Sequence record: MW735835.1
Strand: one strand, 5' to 3'
Length of the DNA stretch: 64,000 nt
In this document: one piece after another, positions 35,548 through 55,936 of the stretch
Layout of the letters: the number at the start of each line of letters is the position of its first letter
Numbering within the stretch: the first letter of the stretch is position 1
Translations under genes and position numbers: made by a program
The notes under the pieces: generated by a model
The model's database searches: none
What the model was told of the DNA's origin: nothing
What the model saw: only the letters and a program-made list of their open reading frames with translations

Positions 35548-35563
35548 CGAACATGCAGAATAG

Positions 35564-35603
35564 AGGAGAGCCCGAAGGCTCTCCTCTTTCTTTTTTCTTT
35601 TGC
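35564..35603. terminator. Terminator between convergent genes
   Basis: AGAGGAGAGCC-CGAA-GGCTCTCCTCT with long T tail. Confidence 0.85.
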
Positions 35604-38510
35604 TTACTTGCCGTAGTAAGCGAGCAGGTTCTGACGAGCCTTCTCGTTGGCCAGATCTTTCAGGCTGGCGTTCCAGTCGATGGTGCGCAGGGCGCGCTCA
35701 CGCTTGGCCGGATCAGCAGTGGAGATCAGGATGGAGGTCAGGCTGTTGAAGTTGCGCAGGCCCTTCGGAGTGATGGTCATCTGACCCACGCCGGTGTAGA
35801 CCTTCTTGGGCGACATGATGCCGTTGCTGTTCTTGAAGAAGAACGTCAACAGCTCGGTCCAACCCTGGACGAAGTCTTCGCCATCCAGACGCAGCACACG
35901 GTTGATGCAGCGATCCAGCAGGGTCTGGTAAGGCGCAGCTTTCACCACGTCATCACCAGCTTCCTTACGGCCGTCTTCGTAGGCTTTCAGGTCTTCGGTC
36001 ACGAATTTCACGGTCATTGTCATCGACTCCTCGGTAATGTCGCTGATACGTTTCTTGATCGACTCATCGTCGAGCAGAGTGGAGACCCCGAACAACGCCG
36101 CCGCACGACGGATCATTGCTTGAGGGGTTGTGTTGATACCTGGCAGGATCTGTCCACGTGCCCAGGCCTTGATTTCACGGCGAGTCCAGTGGTCGAGCTT
36201 ACGTGCGTCCCGGTAACGGTCACGGACGTAGATGCCCGACGGAGTGGACGGAACCACAGTGCCGTGCAGTACAAAGGATTTGGCATCCTCGTGGTACCAG
36301 AACAGCGGAACCCGGAAGCGCAGGTAGACTTCTTCCCAGAGGACGTCTTCCGACGCCTTCTCGGTTGCCGGAATCTCGCCTTTGAGCCATGCCTTGACCT
36401 CAGCGTCACGCCATTGGCCGGCCACCTTCAACGGGCGGGTCGGATCATTGAGGTAAACGCCGCTTTCCAACGCCTTGGGCTTGGTGCTGGTCTTGAGGTA
36501 CTCGATCACTTCGTTATCGGCCCAGTGAGCAGGGCTGACACCGAACTGGACGTCGATCAGTCGACGAACACGTGCTTGAGCTGCCGGATCAGTGAGGGCA
36601 AACTTCGCCACCACTTGTTCATTGGCCAGGGCCTTCAGTTCGTTCCACGACCAGTTCGACGGATCATCGCAGTTACGCAGACGATCTTCGACGTAGGTGC
36701 CGTCCGGCAGGCGCTTGGGCTCACTTCCATTACGGAAATACGCCAGGATGTGCTGGTTGGTCCAGTGCGAGTTGATCTGGTAGATCGAACGCACTTGGCT
36801 GTAGAGGAACTCGCGGTTGATGCTCTTATCGACTTCGATCTCGCCTTTGAGCCATGCCAGCAGCTGGCGTTCAGAACATGGCTTGCCTTCGACGATGGGT
36901 GGGACCGGATTGTTGGGGAGAACACCGGACACGGCAAACTCCTTGACTTCGTTGTCGTCCAACCGATCAGGAACCCTGAACCGAGCACGGATGTTCAGCA
37001 GGATTACATTGGCCGGTACGGTGGTGATGATTTTGCCAGCTGCCCAAGCTTTCAGCTCTTCTTCCGACCAATCACCTGGATGTTTACTGTCCCGCACACT
37101 GTCCTCGACCAGAACCCCCTCATCAAAGCCCGCAGGAAGCGTTTTAGCGCTTACAAACGCCTTGACTGCACCATCGGTCCAGTTCTTGACGAACGCGCCA
37201 CAGGCGATGCGTAGAGCGGCTGTGAGGGTAGCGACCGTGGTGTTCATGCCAGGAGCAATCTCACCACGAGCCCAACCTACCAACTCGACCATGGTCCACT
37301 TGCTGGCGCTGATGAATTTCCGGCGAGCATCATCGAGGATTACTTCTTCCGGAGTTTCCGCAGCCATTGCTGCGCGCAGCTCAGAACCATCAGGAACCAG
37401 TTCGGTCCAGAGGGTAGGAGTTTTCTCTTCAGGAGGGTCCACAGGGTCGACAGGATCTGTCTCTCCCGGCTCTTCCTCGTCTGTTCCTTCACCCTCTTCA
37501 GGTTCTGGTTCAGTAGGTTCAGGTTCGGTCTCTGGTTCTGGCTCATCGACCGGGTCCTCCGGTTCTGGTTCTGGCGGGGTGGGCTTGACACCCGTTTCGA
37601 TGAAGGTGAGGGCCTGGTCTTCAGTCCACCACTCTTCCATCTCATCCATGTGCCGGCTGATCAGGGTCAGCTTGGCTTTGGCGTCAGCATCATTGCGCAC
37701 CAGGCTGAGCAACTGAGCATCGGTGTACTCAGTGTACGCATGCTCAACCTCAGGGATCTTCTGATCGACCACCCAGACCTTGAGGTCCTCGCGCTTCCAG
37801 TACCATTCGCCGCCGAACACTTCCAGCGCCACAGGCAGCAGGTTGAGGTCAGATTCGAGTTCACCGGCCACCCAGGCGGTCAGTTCAGCTTCTGACCAAT
37901 CCGCAGCCAGCTTCGAGGGCCGGTTACGGTCATTGATCAGAACACCGTTGCTGGTTTCCGCAGGCTTGATGCCTTTCTGGATGTACGCGCAGTAGTCTTC
38001 CCAGGTGATTCCCATGGGCAGATCAAACCGCTGGCAGGCTTCGTCGAGGATGTAGTACTGGCTACGCTCGAGGTCACCGAAGAAGCCCGCACCGAGGTCG
38101 GACAGCTCACTGTCGTTCCAGTACTTGGCTTCCTTGACCCAGCGGTTCGGGTCATTGATGTAATAACCACCCGGGCTCTTGGCCGGTTTGCGGTCAAACA
38201 TCAGCCAGTCGTAGAGGTCTTCCTCGCCCCAATTGACAGCATCGCTGTCGGTCAGGGCGGCGCGACCCCGCAGGGCCTTGTAGAAGTCCTCCCCACCACT
38301 GACGTGGTTGGTGAACAGCTCGTTGTTGGCCAGAGCGAAGAGTTCTGCCAGGCTCCAGTCCCCGAGTTCCTTTGCTTCCCGTTCGATGTCGGAGACCCAG
38401 AGGTCATTCGACGTCTTCGGTGGCTCCTGACCCAAGGACTCGTACACGGCAATCTCTTGCTCGCTCCAAGCCTTGGGGTAGACGCCCCTGTATTTATCGC
38501 TCATGCGCAC
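35604..38510 (-). CDS. Large repeat protein: about ten Trp-rich repeats plus C-terminal gp79-like domain
   Basis: Recurrent W(S/T)xxELxAWxxGE and WxDxxVxxF motifs; E/P linker; C-terminal GWTELLTFF...TADPAKR domain; start 38504 or 38510. Confidence 0.85.
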   Translation of the reverse strand: MRMSDKYRGVYPKAWSEQEIAVYESLGQEPPKTSNDLWVSDIEREAKELGDWSLAELFALANNELFTNHVSGGEDFYKALRGRAALTDSDAVNWGEEDLYDWLMFDRKPAKSPGGYYINDPNRWVKEAKYWNDSELSDLGAGFFGDLERSQYYILDEACQRFDLPMGITWEDYCAYIQKGIKPAETSNGVLINDRNRPSKLAADWSEAELTAWVAGELESDLNLLPVALEVFGGEWYWKREDLKVWVVDQKIPEVEHAYTEYTDAQLLSLVRNDADAKAKLTLISRHMDEMEEWWTEDQALTFIETGVKPTPPEPEPEDPVDEPEPETEPEPTEPEPEEGEGTDEEEPGETDPVDPVDPPEEKTPTLWTELVPDGSELRAAMAAETPEEVILDDARRKFISASKWTMVELVGWARGEIAPGMNTTVATLTAALRIACGAFVKNWTDGAVKAFVSAKTLPAGFDEGVLVEDSVRDSKHPGDWSEEELKAWAAGKIITTVPANVILLNIRARFRVPDRLDDNEVKEFAVSGVLPNNPVPPIVEGKPCSERQLLAWLKGEIEVDKSINREFLYSQVRSIYQINSHWTNQHILAYFRNGSEPKRLPDGTYVEDRLRNCDDPSNWSWNELKALANEQVVAKFALTDPAAQARVRRLIDVQFGVSPAHWADNEVIEYLKTSTKPKALESGVYLNDPTRPLKVAGQWRDAEVKAWLKGEIPATEKASEDVLWEEVYLRFRVPLFWYHEDAKSFVLHGTVVPSTPSGIYVRDRYRDARKLDHWTRREIKAWARGQILPGINTTPQAMIRRAAALFGVSTLLDDESIKKRISDITEESMTMTVKFVTEDLKAYEDGRKEAGDDVVKAAPYQTLLDRCINRVLRLDGEDFVQGWTELLTFFFKNSNGIMSPKKVYTGVGQMTITPKGLRNFNSLTSILISTADPAKRERALRTIDWNASLKDLANEKARQNLLAYYGK

Positions 38511-38514
38511 ACCC

Positions 38515-39891
38515 TTAGGTAAAGGCTTCCAGAATGTTCAGTTTGGCCGTCTTCAGTTCTTTGGCGTGTGCCGAGGCCATCATGATGTCCATGAACTTGG
38601 ACGCCACAGAGGTGTTCTCAGCGCCGATGGCGTGCGGGATGGCCGCCAGGGCTTCACCTACGCACTTAGCGCAGAAGTCGGTAGCACCGGTCTTGCAGAA
38701 GATCGGCGAACGGGTAAGGACGGTCTTACCTTCGAGGCTGATGGCACGTTGCTCATCGAGCAGTACCGGACCTTTCGGGGTGATTTCCCAAAGGCCAGCG
38801 TAGTACGAACCTTGACCTTTCTCGATGGTCCGTTCCAGCCCCAGCGTAGCGCCGCAGTCGTCTTCGGAGATCGCGACGTTCTGGAACACCCGCATGAAGA
38901 ACTTCACCGCTTCCCCGCCGAGTGCAGTCAGTGCACCCCGGTAGAAGGAACCGGCACGAGTGGAGTTGAACATCGCCACCAGCTTGTCGGTGTCCCAGCC
39001 CTCGGTCAGCGAGTTGACCACGAGTTCGGCGCTACCGCCCTCGTTGAAGCCCGCTTCAGGACCGTGGATGAGGAACATACGCTTACGTGCCGTGCCCCAG
39101 GTCTTGTTCGACAGGAGGAAGCCTTCAGACGGGTCGTCTTTCAGCCAAGCCTTGTCCATGTCGATCAGTTCGTTCTGGATCTTCGAGACCACAACCGGGT
39201 CGTGCAGACGCTCTTGGTTCTCTTCGAGCAGCTTGGCACGACGACCGTAGACCGCCGGGTCAGTCATCAGCGACTTGGGCGTCAGGGTCGGCACGAACAA
39301 CTGGGTGAAACCAGCCAGTGCGCCCATGCAACGACCAAAGCGCATGTACATCTTCACCGGGATCTGGTCAGGCCGGGGTTCGACACCACTGACCTCAGGA
39401 TCGTCGCACAGCTTGGAGGCGATGATGCGTTCGATCTTGCTGATCTTCACCGGACCGACCTGGTAAGGGATACGGTCTTCGAAGGGTTCGACCAGCGCGA
39501 TGTAGTTGAACAGCAGATCGCCGTAGGTGGAGTCCACTTCCTCATGGAGGTTGGCGATCATGTCCGGGGTGACCTTGAGGTCATCGGCCGGGTAGAACAG
39601 CGGGGTCATCGGGACGGTATCCTCGATGGGTACCCATGCTTCTGGGTCTTCCACCGGGATGTGGCGCACCTGAGGGACACCATGATGATCACCGAGGATC
39701 ACCGTGCCTTCCGGCTCATGTTTCTCACCGGGCAGGTAGACTTCGGTGACATCGGCCTTGTAGCGGATGTCGTAAGCCTGAGGGACGATGCCGTTCTCAG
39801 GACGGACGACTGAGAAGGCACTGATGACCCAGTCCTTACGGCGGTAGCACCCTGCTCGCAGGGCGGCTACGTAGAGGTCTTGCTTCTTCAC
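38515..39891 (-). CDS. Virion RNA polymerase beta-prime C-terminal subunit (phiKZ gp80-like)
   Basis: GSFYRG, EDDCGAT, TRSPIFCKT..FCAKCVGE beta-prime Zn site. Confidence 0.85.
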   Translation of the reverse strand: MKKQDLYVAALRAGCYRRKDWVISAFSVVRPENGIVPQAYDIRYKADVTEVYLPGEKHEPEGTVILGDHHGVPQVRHIPVEDPEAWVPIEDTVPMTPLFYPADDLKVTPDMIANLHEEVDSTYGDLLFNYIALVEPFEDRIPYQVGPVKISKIERIIASKLCDDPEVSGVEPRPDQIPVKMYMRFGRCMGALAGFTQLFVPTLTPKSLMTDPAVYGRRAKLLEENQERLHDPVVVSKIQNELIDMDKAWLKDDPSEGFLLSNKTWGTARKRMFLIHGPEAGFNEGGSAELVVNSLTEGWDTDKLVAMFNSTRAGSFYRGALTALGGEAVKFFMRVFQNVAISEDDCGATLGLERTIEKGQGSYYAGLWEITPKGPVLLDEQRAISLEGKTVLTRSPIFCKTGATDFCAKCVGEALAAIPHAIGAENTSVASKFMDIMMASAHAKELKTAKLNILEAFT

Positions 39892-40721
39892 GGCGTATCC
39901 TCCGGAAGGGTAGAGAGCACGGCGGTGACGCGCTTGTAGGACTTCTGCACGACGAACGGATCATCATGCATCTCTTCTACGAAGAACATCACTTCGTCAC
40001 GCAGTGCATCGCGAGGGGTCTTGGCCAGGATGGCAATGGACAGCAATTGGTCAGCAAGATCCTCAGGACCGAGATCAGCCAATTGAGGCCGGGCGCTCTT
40101 GACCAGTTCTTCTGCCGAGGAACCGATCTCCACACCTGCGTTCAGGGATTCCATGCCGACGGTCAACTTCTCACCGACGATCTTCTGGTGAGCGTTCAGC
40201 AGACGGGTAGCGTTCTGTACGCCGTCTTCACCCTGCACGGTGTAACCCAGGTTACGTTCGACCCGTTCCTTGATGGCAAGGATCACGTCGCCGGAACACC
40301 CCAGCACGTACTCCATCAGTTCTTCAGGTTCGACCGCCATGTGGATGGCCAGTACGTTGCAGAGGGTATCGACCCCGTCTTCCCCGGCATTGACCGCGGT
40401 GAGGAATTCGTAGTCGTTGTCATTCGGGTTGAACAGCAAGCACTCGAGGATGCTTGCCAGCGGATCGAGCTTCAGGATGTCGAGGTCCAGTTCGATCTGC
40501 ATCTGCGCCAGCAAGGCACGGACCTGGTCCATGACGATGGTGCGGGCTTCGTCAACGAGGGTGATACTGTCGTGCTCGTTGGCGTTCATGCGCAGGATCA
40601 GGATACGGTCTTTGTAACCGGTAGCCTTGTACTTCTCCAGCGCTTGAGTCAGGGCCTCGAAACCATCGTAGACGGACGGGTCAACCTTATCCTGAAGGAT
40701 ATCGGAAAGTTCTTGCAACAT
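39888..40721 (-). CDS. Conserved acidic helical protein (gp81-like position)
   Basis: AAGGA RBS; coupled to vRNAP gene. Confidence 0.8.
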   Translation of the reverse strand: MLQELSDILQDKVDPSVYDGFEALTQALEKYKATGYKDRILILRMNANEHDSITLVDEARTIVMDQVRALLAQMQIELDLDILKLDPLASILECLLFNPNDNDYEFLTAVNAGEDGVDTLCNVLAIHMAVEPEELMEYVLGCSGDVILAIKERVERNLGYTVQGEDGVQNATRLLNAHQKIVGEKLTVGMESLNAGVEIGSSAEELVKSARPQLADLGPEDLADQLLSIAILAKTPRDALRDEVMFFVEEMHDDPFVVQKSYKRVTAVLSTLPEDTP

Positions 40722-45909: not shown

Positions 45910-46701
45910 ATGAAACAAGTCTACCTCGGCGTCAAAATCATCGTGGGCCAGCCCATGACTCGTGGTGCTTACAACGAGTACCGCGGATGGCAAACCCCGG
46001 AGCGTGAAAACGCTGAAGACGAAGGCTATCTGGTGGAATACCCGGACAGCGCGCCGAACCACCCGGACCATGCCGGGTACATCAGCTGGTCACCCAAGTC
46101 GGTCTTCGATAACAGCCACATCGCCCTTGGCGACGTGTCGAACTTCCCGCCCTTCGCCGTCCGTCTGATCGGCGAGCGCAACCAGCTGGCCAGCAACCTG
46201 GGCAAGCTGAAGACCTTCCTGGAAGGTGACGTTACCCACCTCAGTGAGCGTAACCTCGATCTGCTGAACCGTCAGGTACAGGCACAAGAAGTCCTGCTGG
46301 ACATCCTGAACCAGCGCCTGGATTCGGTTGACCTGGGCGTGAGCGTGTCCACTTCGGTTCGCGTCGAGCTGGACCTGGCCAACAACAACGCCAAAGACCT
46401 GATGGGTCTGGCAATTGCTGCTGGTGCTGAAGGTCAAGGCCCCACCGACGTCATCGTGGCACTCGAAGATGCCAAGATCGTCGATGCCGAGGGCAACGAG
46501 ATCGCCGACTCCAGCGTCGAGATCGAGAACCTGGTGCGTGGTTTCTCCGTGAGCGGCAACATCGGCGAGAACCTCTACGGTGTTGCAGTCTGCCGTGAGC
46601 GTTGCGTAGCCAACGTGCACAGCTCCTTCGTTGAAGAAGGCACCAAGCTGTCCCTGCTGGTCAAGATCGGCAGCCACAACCGCGCGCCAGCTTTCGCGTA
46701 A
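45910..46701 (+). CDS. Three-domain phage protein (YxGxK/EGYLVxY/SWSP domain + crAss001_48-like helix pair + unknown C-terminal domain)
   Basis: TAAGGA RBS; YLGVKII..PMTRGAYNEYRGW..DEGYLVEY..YISWSPK; ERNQL..KLKTFL..LLNRQ..LDILNQR. Confidence 0.75.
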   Translation: MKQVYLGVKIIVGQPMTRGAYNEYRGWQTPERENAEDEGYLVEYPDSAPNHPDHAGYISWSPKSVFDNSHIALGDVSNFPPFAVRLIGERNQLASNLGKLKTFLEGDVTHLSERNLDLLNRQVQAQEVLLDILNQRLDSVDLGVSVSTSVRVELDLANNNAKDLMGLAIAAGAEGQGPTDVIVALEDAKIVDAEGNEIADSSVEIENLVRGFSVSGNIGENLYGVAVCRERCVANVHSSFVEEGTKLSLLVKIGSHNRAPAFA

Positions 46702-47350: not shown

Positions 47351-47426
47351 TCCGCGATAGCTCAGTTGGTAGAGCAGCAGACTGTTAATCTGTTGGTCCC
47401 TGGTTCGAGTCCAGGTCGCGGAGCCA
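47351..47426 (+). tRNA. tRNA-Asn (GTT)
   Basis: TCCGCGA/TCGCGGA acceptor, AGCTCAGTTGGTAGAGC D-arm, CT-GTT-AA loop, GTTCGAGT T-loop, encoded CCA. Confidence 0.97.
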
Positions 47427-47435
47427 GCTTCACCC

Positions 47436-47512
47436 GGCTCCATAGTTCAGTTGGTTAGAATGCTAGCCTGTCACGCTAGAGGTCAGGGGTTCGAGTCCCC
47501 TTGGAGTCGCCA
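47436..47512 (+). tRNA. tRNA-Asp (GTC)
   Basis: GGCTCCA/TGGAGTC acceptor, CTAGC-CT-GTC-AC-GCTAG anticodon arm, GGGGTTCGAGTCCCC T-arm, encoded CCA. Confidence 0.97.
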
Positions 47513-54496: not shown

Positions 54497-54619
54497 TTCC
54501 TGAAACTGAGTGGAGTATATTGAAGGTGGTTATACAAATGGATATCGGGCCTTTGTAAGAATTTACGCCAATCTCTATGATTGGGTACTTACGCCAAGCC
54601 ACTTTTAAGAGACTCTGTC

Positions 54620-55936
54620 ATGAAACAAGCACTCGTTGCATCTCTGGAGGCCATCGACTTCCAGCGGAACTCCACCCTCATCAAGGAGATGGGGATGCAG
54701 TTCGACACCTGCCTGCGAGACCCGTCCAAAGACACCTTCAACAAGTGCTCCGAGGCGCTCTCCGCCATCGCTTTCAAGCACACCAAGATGAAGTTCCGCT
54801 TCCACTTCGTTCGTCTTGGTGGTCCGAACGCCTTCGTGATCCCGCCGCAGGCCGACATTGCCAACCCGATGCGCCCTGACGAAATCGCCACCAAGGTTCA
54901 GCGCCTGGGTCGCATGCCCACCGAGCAGGAGCTGTTCAAGGGCACGGTGGATCTGAAGACCGGCCAAGTTGGTGGCATCTACTCGGAAATCCCGATCGAC
55001 ATCTTCACTGCTGTCGAGTTCTTCACCGACCGCAACATGGGCAACATCACCGGCGACCACATCGCTGCGATCTCTGCTCATGAAATGGGTCACGGCTTCA
55101 CCTACCTGCGCTACCTGGGCCAGATGGTCCTGTCCAACTGCGCCGTGGCCGAGATCATCAAGAAGCAGCACGAAGGCGCTGACGACAAGGTGGTCCAGGA
55201 AGTCGTCAAGGTGGTCGAACAACGCACTGGCTGGCGCCTGCGCGATCTGGGCGAAATCAACCGTTCCACCGATCCACTGGTGGTCCAGCAAGTGATCATG
55301 GCTGGCATGGTGGACAGCATCCGTTCGGAACTGGGCACCAAGTTCTATGATCGTCGCGCTTTCGAGTTCTCTGCTGACCAGTTCGTGGCCCGTCACGGCG
55401 GTGCTCAACTGATCGTGGAAGCTTTGGACATCATGTACAAGTCCTACCCGGCGTACTTCAAAGAGTACCGTGGCCGCATGGCGAACATCATGTCCTCTCT
55501 GGTCGGCTACGGTCGCCTCGTTCTCGGCTCCCTGATGGTTGCCGGCGGCATCATGATGGTCCAGCCGCTGTTCTTCATCTTCGGTCTGTTCATGGTCCTC
55601 ATGAGCCTGTTCGGCGGTGGCGATGACGGTATCTACGACCCGATTCCCAAACGCTACGAAGCGATGCGTCGTGAGCTGATTGCGTCCTCCAAGGACCAGA
55701 ACCTCTCCATCGCACAGCGTAAAGAGATCATCGACCAGATCACTGCAATCGACAGCATCCTGGAAGAAGTCGCCAAGAACTCCAAGGGCTATTTCGCTCC
55801 CGACGTTGCCATTGAGTTCCTCAAGGGTATCTTCAACGGCCGACCGGCTGAGCAGAAGTTCCAGCGCATGCTCGAGAACCTGGTCAACAACCGCCTGTTC
55901 GAACTCTCCAACCAACTTCAAGCCAAATCGGTGTGA
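54620..55936 (+). CDS. Virion protein with HExxH zinc-peptidase-like motif and hydrophobic hairpin (gp83/84-like)
   Basis: AHEMGHG, EFSADQF; long hydrophobic segment; ASLE near N-terminus. Confidence 0.7.
   Translation: MKQALVASLEAIDFQRNSTLIKEMGMQFDTCLRDPSKDTFNKCSEALSAIAFKHTKMKFRFHFVRLGGPNAFVIPPQADIANPMRPDEIATKVQRLGRMPTEQELFKGTVDLKTGQVGGIYSEIPIDIFTAVEFFTDRNMGNITGDHIAAISAHEMGHGFTYLRYLGQMVLSNCAVAEIIKKQHEGADDKVVQEVVKVVEQRTGWRLRDLGEINRSTDPLVVQQVIMAGMVDSIRSELGTKFYDRRAFEFSADQFVARHGGAQLIVEALDIMYKSYPAYFKEYRGRMANIMSSLVGYGRLVLGSLMVAGGIMMVQPLFFIFGLFMVLMSLFGGGDDGIYDPIPKRYEAMRRELIASSKDQNLSIAQRKEIIDQITAIDSILEEVAKNSKGYFAPDVAIEFLKGIFNGRPAEQKFQRMLENLVNNRLFELSNQLQAKSV

Follow-up and report, generated by a model that had tools for sequence, protein, structure and literature searches.

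A jumbo-phage protein with about ten Trp-rich repeat units, a probable capsid decoration protein of the phiKZ gp81/Goslar gp77 family

The window analyzed here is a stretch of 64,000 nucleotides from record MW735835.1 (Pseudomonas phage pPa_SNUABM_DT01, a jumbo phage, hereafter DT01), in which a window coordinate equals the record coordinate minus 124,000. The gene of interest, PA10_00167, carries the deposited label "hypothetical protein" and is summarized with its features in Table 1. The mechanical open reading frame (ORF) at 35604-38510 on the minus strand opens with a GTG at 38510, and a preliminary description made from the sequence alone had accordingly counted 968 amino acids (aa). The ATG at 38504 (MSDKY...) is the start in the deposited annotation and in every relative, which gives a protein of 966 aa. 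Long plus-strand ORFs antisense to PA10_00167 are a usual by-product of the genomic G+C content (57%), and the minus-strand frame is taken as the real coding frame because conservation supports it. When the full protein was searched by tblastn against 50,697 deposited phage genomes, full-length similarity was found in DT01 only, with short matches in Psa21 and D6. DT01 is therefore the only cultured member of the clade with expanded repeats described below.

Most of PA10_00167 is made of about ten copies of a Trp-rich repeat, as first proposed, of which nine are clear and one is degenerate. With a single unit (aa 655-735) as the phmmer query, eight other units were matched at aa 7-63, 90-164, 172-217, 387-417, 440-512, 525-572, 579-633 and 748-786, with independent E values from 1e-3 to 6e-12. 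After removal of the seed unit, seven matches of at least 10 bits remained in the real protein (best 32.5, sum 152 bits), whereas the maximum among 200 residue shuffles was 5.9 bits and none of the 200 reached 10 bits. The units thus align with one another well above the shuffled background. The clear units begin at about aa 11, 90, 166, 364, 440, 517, 579, 659 and 734, a period of ~75 aa. Each of the first three units (U1, U2 and U3) contains a B helix (W-x4-V-x2-F...G-x2-P), a GxYxxDxxR hairpin, an A helix (WSxxELxAWxxGE) and a variable helix. The motif agrees with the pattern given in the preliminary description, except that the spacer between the R of the hairpin and the W of the A helix is 7 residues long, not 5. 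The Trp positions of the unit are invariant across 49 homologs. The array had been described as four units before and six after an acidic PEPEPE linker at ~37430-37580; it resolves into three units and a degenerate fourth, a linker at the expected place that is predicted to be disordered, and six further units (Table 1). The linker is poorly conserved, with 25% identity among relatives.

Table 1. Features of PA10_00167 and its surroundings, in window coordinates
Feature	Coordinates	Strand	Remarks
Coding sequence PA10_00167 (QTH80367.1)	35604..38504	-	966 aa plus stop; ortholog of phiKZ gp81, Psa21 gp088 and Goslar gp77
N-terminal array, U1 (aa 11-89), U2 (aa 90-165), U3 (aa 166-233)	37806..38474	-	Very acidic, isoelectric point (pI) ~4.3
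Degenerate U4 (aa 234-290) and lone B-helix remnant (aa 291-304)	37593..37805	-	U4 retains the helices and has lost the GxYxxDxxR hairpin
Acidic Pro/Glu-rich linker, aa 305-365 (61 residues)	37410..37592	-	Net charge -23; predicted disordered
C-terminal array, six units (aa 366-439, 440-516, 517-578, 579-658, 659-733, 734-812)	36069..37409	-	
Lone B-helix-like segment, aa 813-829	36018..36068	-	Joins array to anchor; highly conserved, 78%
Putative C-terminal all-alpha anchor domain, aa 830-966 (137 aa)	35607..36017	-	pI 9.2; phrog_18957 match; homologous to the globular part of Goslar gp77
PA10_00168, virion RNA polymerase beta' fragment	38515..39891	-	phrog_2962; ortholog of phiKZ gp80
PA10_00169	39888..40721	-	phrog_5038; counterpart of phiKZ gp79 and Goslar gp79; first of a conserved three-gene block
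Perfect hairpin, 11-bp stem	35562..35587		Between convergent PA10_00166 (+) and PA10_00167 (-); T-run on the plus strand, A-run on the other side

No tandem repeat of unit length was found in PA10_00167 at the DNA level, and recent slippage is therefore excluded. Identity among the units within the protein is only 10-36%, and among orthologous units of related phages it is 40-69%. Together with the lack of a DNA repeat, these values indicate that the duplications are old and that each unit has been individually maintained.

The full-length protein was modeled by AlphaFold2 with the 49 homologs. The mean predicted local distance difference test score (pLDDT) is 86.6, and disorder (pLDDT <50) is confined to residues 312-360. 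The predicted template modeling score (pTM) of the full-length model is low (0.45), as expected because the disordered linker splits the chain. In the model, every unit is built from three helices, each 8-15 residues long, together with short 3-10 turns and a beta bridge of two residues within the GxYxxD hairpin. When a piece of two units (aa 579-733) was modeled with an alignment of the orthologous pieces from IMG/VR loci, the pLDDT was 93 and the pTM 0.78, and on the strength of these model scores adjacent units are suggested to pack rigidly and in a fixed way. The invariant W, E, D and R residues are placed either along a single face of a helix or in the hairpin, and their most likely role is to hold the fold together, not to form a binding site. 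Binding specificity, if any, would then reside in the variable surfaces of the units.

The preliminary description recognized no named family for the repeat, and our searches agree. Nothing above threshold was obtained in Pfam or NCBIfam with the whole protein, one unit, the two-unit piece or the relatives, and a PDB sequence search with a profile of nine units returned no match. The structural models likewise found no fold neighbor in a PDB copy for Foldseek that reaches 2026-04-08 and returned no Goslar entry: the full model matched generic helical-repeat proteins only (best E = 0.25), and the two-unit model matched nothing (best E = 3.7). When the nine-unit profile was run against 1.84 billion representative proteins, 120 were matched at E ≤0.001, nearly all with a C-terminal domain of the type described below. 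Among the 165 proteins collected from both of our searches, 150 carry the C-terminal domain of PA10_00167, and the Trp-rich unit is therefore confined to a single protein family; the other 15 are, by appearance, mostly fragments or divergent members. PA10_00167 also matches phrog_18270 ("virion structural protein", E = 7.3e-60) in six separate stretches, because the two units of that profile match the repeats many times. phiKZ gp81 itself matches the same profile with E = 1.5e-227.

A recurrent resemblance to SAM/Pointed domains (PF02198) was considered and rejected, as the SAM_PNT scores of 11.6-17 bits lie below the cut-off of 24 and find no support in the fold. SAM structures were not among the Foldseek matches of the two-unit model (best SARM1, E = 4.2, probability 0.03). 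The resemblance resides in the B helix, whose W-x3-[DE]-V-x2-[FWY]-L pattern recalls the first helix of SAM/Pointed domains. It recurs, always below threshold, at B helices including aa 13-24, 92-103, 442-453 and 661-672, and at aa 89-102 of phiKZ gp81, with Pfam E values of 0.006-0.3 and a PDB match to the SAM domain chain 2d8c at E = 0.25, none of them significant. Both kinds of domain are helical and ~70 aa long, and the opening W-x3-[DE]-V-x2-W-L helix is akin to the B and A helices of the unit; however, the unit has a hairpin, and SAM domains do not.

The C-terminal domain links PA10_00167 to a protein of known position. It is the only basic part of the protein, and phrog_18957 matches it at aa 853-965 (E = 5.7e-12). 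The same profile matches phiKZ gp81 (3.5e-6), Goslar gp77 (2.8e-18), RP12 ORF264 and Ea35-70 gp277. A profile of the DT01 clade matches PDB chain 11fg_A, the "Capsid Decorator gp77" of Goslar (E = 0.0017). When Goslar was left out of a wider family profile, gp77 scored 59 bits against it (E = 5.6e-15 in a PDB-sized search), and hhalign aligned that profile with gp77 over 128 columns with a probability of 97.7%. In addition, the last ~150 aa of PA10_00167 match many chimallivirus proteins in a Foldseek search of BFVD. The preliminary description had likened a C-terminal domain of ~130 aa to a small phiKZ gene; a domain of ~137 aa is indeed real and common to phiKZ gp81, but gp81 has 473 aa and two units, and the small version of the family is Goslar gp77 with its 212 aa.

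Goslar gp77 is abundant in virions by mass spectrometry (72.6% coverage). In a cryo-EM study (bioRxiv 10.64898/2026.04.21.720040), it is located on the outer capsid surface between two protomers of the major capsid protein (MCP); a single copy was built in each asymmetric unit, and no fewer than two others can be seen. Capsids that are empty, have no portal and are devoid of the internal vertex complex carry it as well. Given the homology to gp77 and the shared gene position, aa 830-966 of PA10_00167 are most likely an outer-capsid anchor.

The gene position is shared across the family. PA10_00167 is the last gene of a three-gene block, which reads gp79 (head protein)-gp80 (virion RNA polymerase, or vRNAP, beta' fragment)-gp81 in phiKZ, gp086-087-088 in Psa21, gp138-139-140 in 201phi2-1, gp79-gp78-gp77 in Goslar and PA10_00169-168-167 in DT01, and the order is kept in 16 of 16 IMG/VR relatives. 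The first gene belongs to phrog_5038 in all four phages tested. The second belongs to phrog_2962 in DT01 and was identified elsewhere as a vRNAP beta' fragment by tblastn or annotation. In DT01, phiKZ and Goslar, the third contains the phrog_18957 domain. PA10_00169 gave no significant pairwise BLASTP match to phiKZ gp79 or Goslar gp79, so that these are linked via phrog_5038 only. The stop codon of PA10_00168 lies 10 nucleotides before the ATG of PA10_00167, and no terminator was found between the two. The common strand, the 10-nucleotide gap in DT01 and the order in all 16 related loci support the earlier proposal of co-transcription with the vRNAP, and PA10_00167 is probably co-transcribed with both the vRNAP subunit and the head protein. 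The hairpin downstream likely marks the end of the PA10_00167 transcript and could terminate both convergent transcripts.

DT01 is among the chimallin-encoding phages listed in a survey of chimalliviruses, in whose core-gene table cg19 (Goslar gp79/phiKZ gp79) and cg20 (Goslar gp78/phiKZ gp80) are followed by the DNA polymerase, and the gp77/gp81 family does not appear (bioRxiv 10.1101/2023.02.24.529968). The probable reason for the absence of the family is a sequence divergence too great for the clustering applied there.

The repeat unit and the C-terminal domain also occur together in phiKZ gp81, Psa21 gp088 and 201phi2-1 gp140, which supports the earlier suggestion that repeats have expanded on a conserved anchor of the virion. 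The unit profile found two units in phiKZ gp81, two in Psa21 gp088 and one or two in 201phi2-1 gp140, and no unit in Goslar gp77, RP12 ORF264 or Ea35-70 gp277. Goslar, with a genome of 237 kb, has 0 units; phiKZ (280 kb) and Psa21 (305 kb) have 2 each, and DT01 (265 kb) has ~10. Metagenomic relatives carry between 1 and ~18 units; most family members have two, and a minority have 6, 8-9, 10-12 or 14-18. In a tree of the anchor domain, proteins with two units and proteins with 6-17 units are interleaved. PA10_00167 has a net charge of -54 and a pI of 4.7, and nearly every unit is acidic. The close two-unit relatives, Goslar gp77 and Ea35-70 gp277 (net charge -73) have acidic low-complexity N-termini in place of the repeats. 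Among the members with few or no units (P0056, P0057, P0058, P0063, P0159, P0162, Ea35-70 gp277 and Goslar gp77), the N-termini were seen to be acidic or rich in Ala, Val, Glu, Lys and Pro. Within the protein, the distal units U1-U2 (61-69%) are conserved to the same degree as the anchor (71%), and variability is highest in the linker and the middle units.

Taken together, we consider with moderate confidence that PA10_00167 is the DT01 version of a chimallivirus capsid decoration protein of the phiKZ gp81/Goslar gp77 family, similar in kind to Hoc, with a conserved anchor and a variable, very acidic projection. Going by the Goslar cryo-EM structure, the basic C-terminal domain would dock on the outer capsid surface between two adjacent MCP subunits, in at least 60 copies per capsid. 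The anatomy of the protein suggests that the other 830 residues would extend away from the shell as a pair of stiff rods, each a row of small domains, with a flexible spacer between them; this would cover the capsid with a dense and strongly negative "fur." Such a layer might act like T4 Hoc, by weak multivalent contacts to polymers of the host surface or matrix and/or by making particles less prone to non-specific sticking. The "multivalent scaffold" of the preliminary description is possible in this form, as a displayed array. Outward display is favored over a fixed structural role because the unit number does not follow genome size, because proteins with few and many units are interleaved in the tree, because acidic tails replace the units in relatives and because the charge of -54 is combined with a disordered spacer.

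Several observations weigh against this interpretation. The capsid location is carried over from Goslar, whose anchor domain is ~20% identical. phiKZ gp81 was modeled in neither of the two phiKZ cryo-EM studies and is absent from the PDB. No match to a ligand-binding family or fold in Pfam, NCBIfam or the PDB speaks for adhesion, and pTM and helix periodicity are the only basis for the proposed rods and for the exposed position of conserved residues. Moreover, the conservation of U1-U2 at the level of the anchor would suit a partner that is itself conserved better than a host ligand that evolves fast, and it lends some weight to the alternatives below in which the array binds a conserved phage component or lies on the shell.

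The same anchor could serve a capsid strap or cement, in which the array would lie flat on the shell, its units contacting capsid subunits and stabilizing a very large capsid. The position of Goslar gp77 between two MCP protomers, the individual conservation of units among orthologs (40-69%) and the apparent rigid packing of adjacent units in the model are all consistent with this. However, the observed unit numbers (0, 1, 2, 3, 6, 9-10, 12 and 17-18) track neither genome nor capsid size; the array is also broken by a disordered acidic linker of ~60 aa, low-complexity acidic tails replace the units in close relatives, and Goslar has zero units. We therefore regard a strap as unlikely.

Alternatively, PA10_00167 could be an internal head protein that is ejected into the cell with the virion RNA polymerase, a possibility that includes the ideas of an injected decoy and of a vRNAP partner. 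The probable co-transcription with the vRNAP subunit and the head protein, in a block conserved across the family, would fit, and many ejected proteins are packaged in phiKZ-like heads (PMC5694885). However, neighborhood in late structural operons is weak evidence of physical partnership, and the homologous domain of Goslar lies outside the capsid and occurs on empty particles that have neither a portal nor the internal complex. The injected decoy of the preliminary description is not upheld for this same reason, and we judge an ejected protein of any kind to be quite improbable.

The conservation of U1-U2 at a level like that of the anchor would also suit a partner encoded by the phage, and the family is restricted to chimalliviruses. 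Both points would fit an intracellular adaptor, in which the array binds a phage structure during assembly (the nuclear shell, PhuZ filaments or particles in "bouquets") and nothing extracellular. Yet the family is missing from the chimallivirus core-gene list beside its two neighbors, and capsid docking and trafficking are normal both in Goslar, which has no repeats, and in phiKZ, which has few. We hold this to be very unlikely, and attach the same low weight to the combined proposal that the Trp-rich unit is a new fold and that exterior arrays of it are intracellular adaptors to the nucleus shell, PhuZ filaments or bouquet capsids. If true, it would provide a molecular handle on the trafficking and docking of chimallivirus capsids.

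Finally, a DNA-binding coat of SAP, helix-turn-helix or SAM-like helical modules, as once suggested, is extremely improbable: beyond the weak SAM_PNT and PDB SAM chain scores given above and a pithovirus SAP protein at E = 0.19 in BFVD, no significant Pfam, NCBIfam or PDB fold match to such modules was found in PA10_00167, the protein has a net charge of -54 and a pI of 4.7, nearly all of its units are acidic, and its likely site is outside the capsid.

The architecture of a capsid decoration protein proposed here has known parallels. Decoration proteins of the T4 Hoc and T5 pb10 type, with immunoglobulin (Ig) domains, consist of one capsid-binding domain and a string of small, independently folded projecting domains. 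Such proteins, which are variable and dispensable, probably confer weak adhesion of a multivalent kind. PA10_00167 follows the same logic of an anchor and a projecting string of domains, but there is no kinship in sequence or fold: its units are alpha-helical with a short hairpin and are not Ig-like beta sandwiches, and its array is much longer (~10 units vs. 3) and strongly acidic. An assignment to the Ig-like type itself was tried and rejected, as no Pfam Ig or BIG match was obtained and the predicted structure is helical apart from the two-residue bridges. Within its own family, PA10_00167 shares with Goslar gp77 (PDB 11fg/11mk/11ml) the C-terminal all-alpha domain and the gene site after the phrog_5038 and vRNAP beta' genes, and differs from it in that gp77 has no repeat unit and a short low-complexity N-terminus. 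With phiKZ gp81, Psa21 gp088 and 201phi2-1 gp140 (PHROG 18270) it shares the repeat unit, the anchor domain and the gene position; those proteins, of 467-570 aa, contain only 1-2 units, and a Pro/Glu linker between two arrays is absent from them.

The protein family was already known, and the role of its anchor has been known since April 2026 from Goslar. Three points are not described in the literature consulted: that phiKZ gp81-type proteins belong with Goslar gp77; that this family carries a Trp-rich domain without a Pfam or NCBIfam family or a PDB fold neighbor; and that this domain has multiplied to ~10-18 copies in one clade, of which only DT01 is in culture. Public records describe phiKZ gp81 and Psa21 gp088 as virion structural proteins, and 201phi2-1 gp140 too is annotated as a virion protein. 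No statement on the function of phiKZ gp81 was found in the literature, and the supplement of a size-exclusion chromatography-mass spectrometry study lists PHIKZ081 as detected only; the "gp81" of SPN3US papers is the portal of SPN3US, and the remaining literature matches deal with other phages. phiKZ gp81, until now known as a "virion structural protein" only, is thus linked to the Goslar capsid decorator, and the family appears to combine a conserved anchor with a highly variable outward projection. DT01 would offer an entry system for the possible roles of a capsid "fur," namely adsorption, retention in biofilm or mucus, colloidal stability and intracellular trafficking. The ~75-aa unit is compact, confidently predicted and free of family or fold neighbors, which makes it a good target for structural genomics, and the anchor with its array could be a display scaffold on jumbo-phage capsids.

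Some minor observations were made along the way. Residues 43-142 of PDB chain 36za_7 ("Inner-peripheral baseplate spoke gp220," 147 aa) have exactly the letters of residues 108-207 of Goslar gp77 (11fg_A), and the name of 36za_7 is probably a naming mix-up in a composite model. A search of the 445 ORFs of the window with the anchor profile found no paralog apart from one weak match (11.9 bits, E = 0.0018). This match lies at 54581-55933 in a plus-strand frame. An ORF of the same length overlaps it on the minus strand, and the match may be due to chance. For PA10_00177 (window ~45910-46701, plus strand), the depositor noted a resemblance to Dec, the decoration protein of Salmonella phage ST64T; it may be a second capsid decoration gene, ~7 kb away. 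The adjacent tRNA-Asn(GTT) and tRNA-Asp(GTC) are annotated at window 47351-47512.

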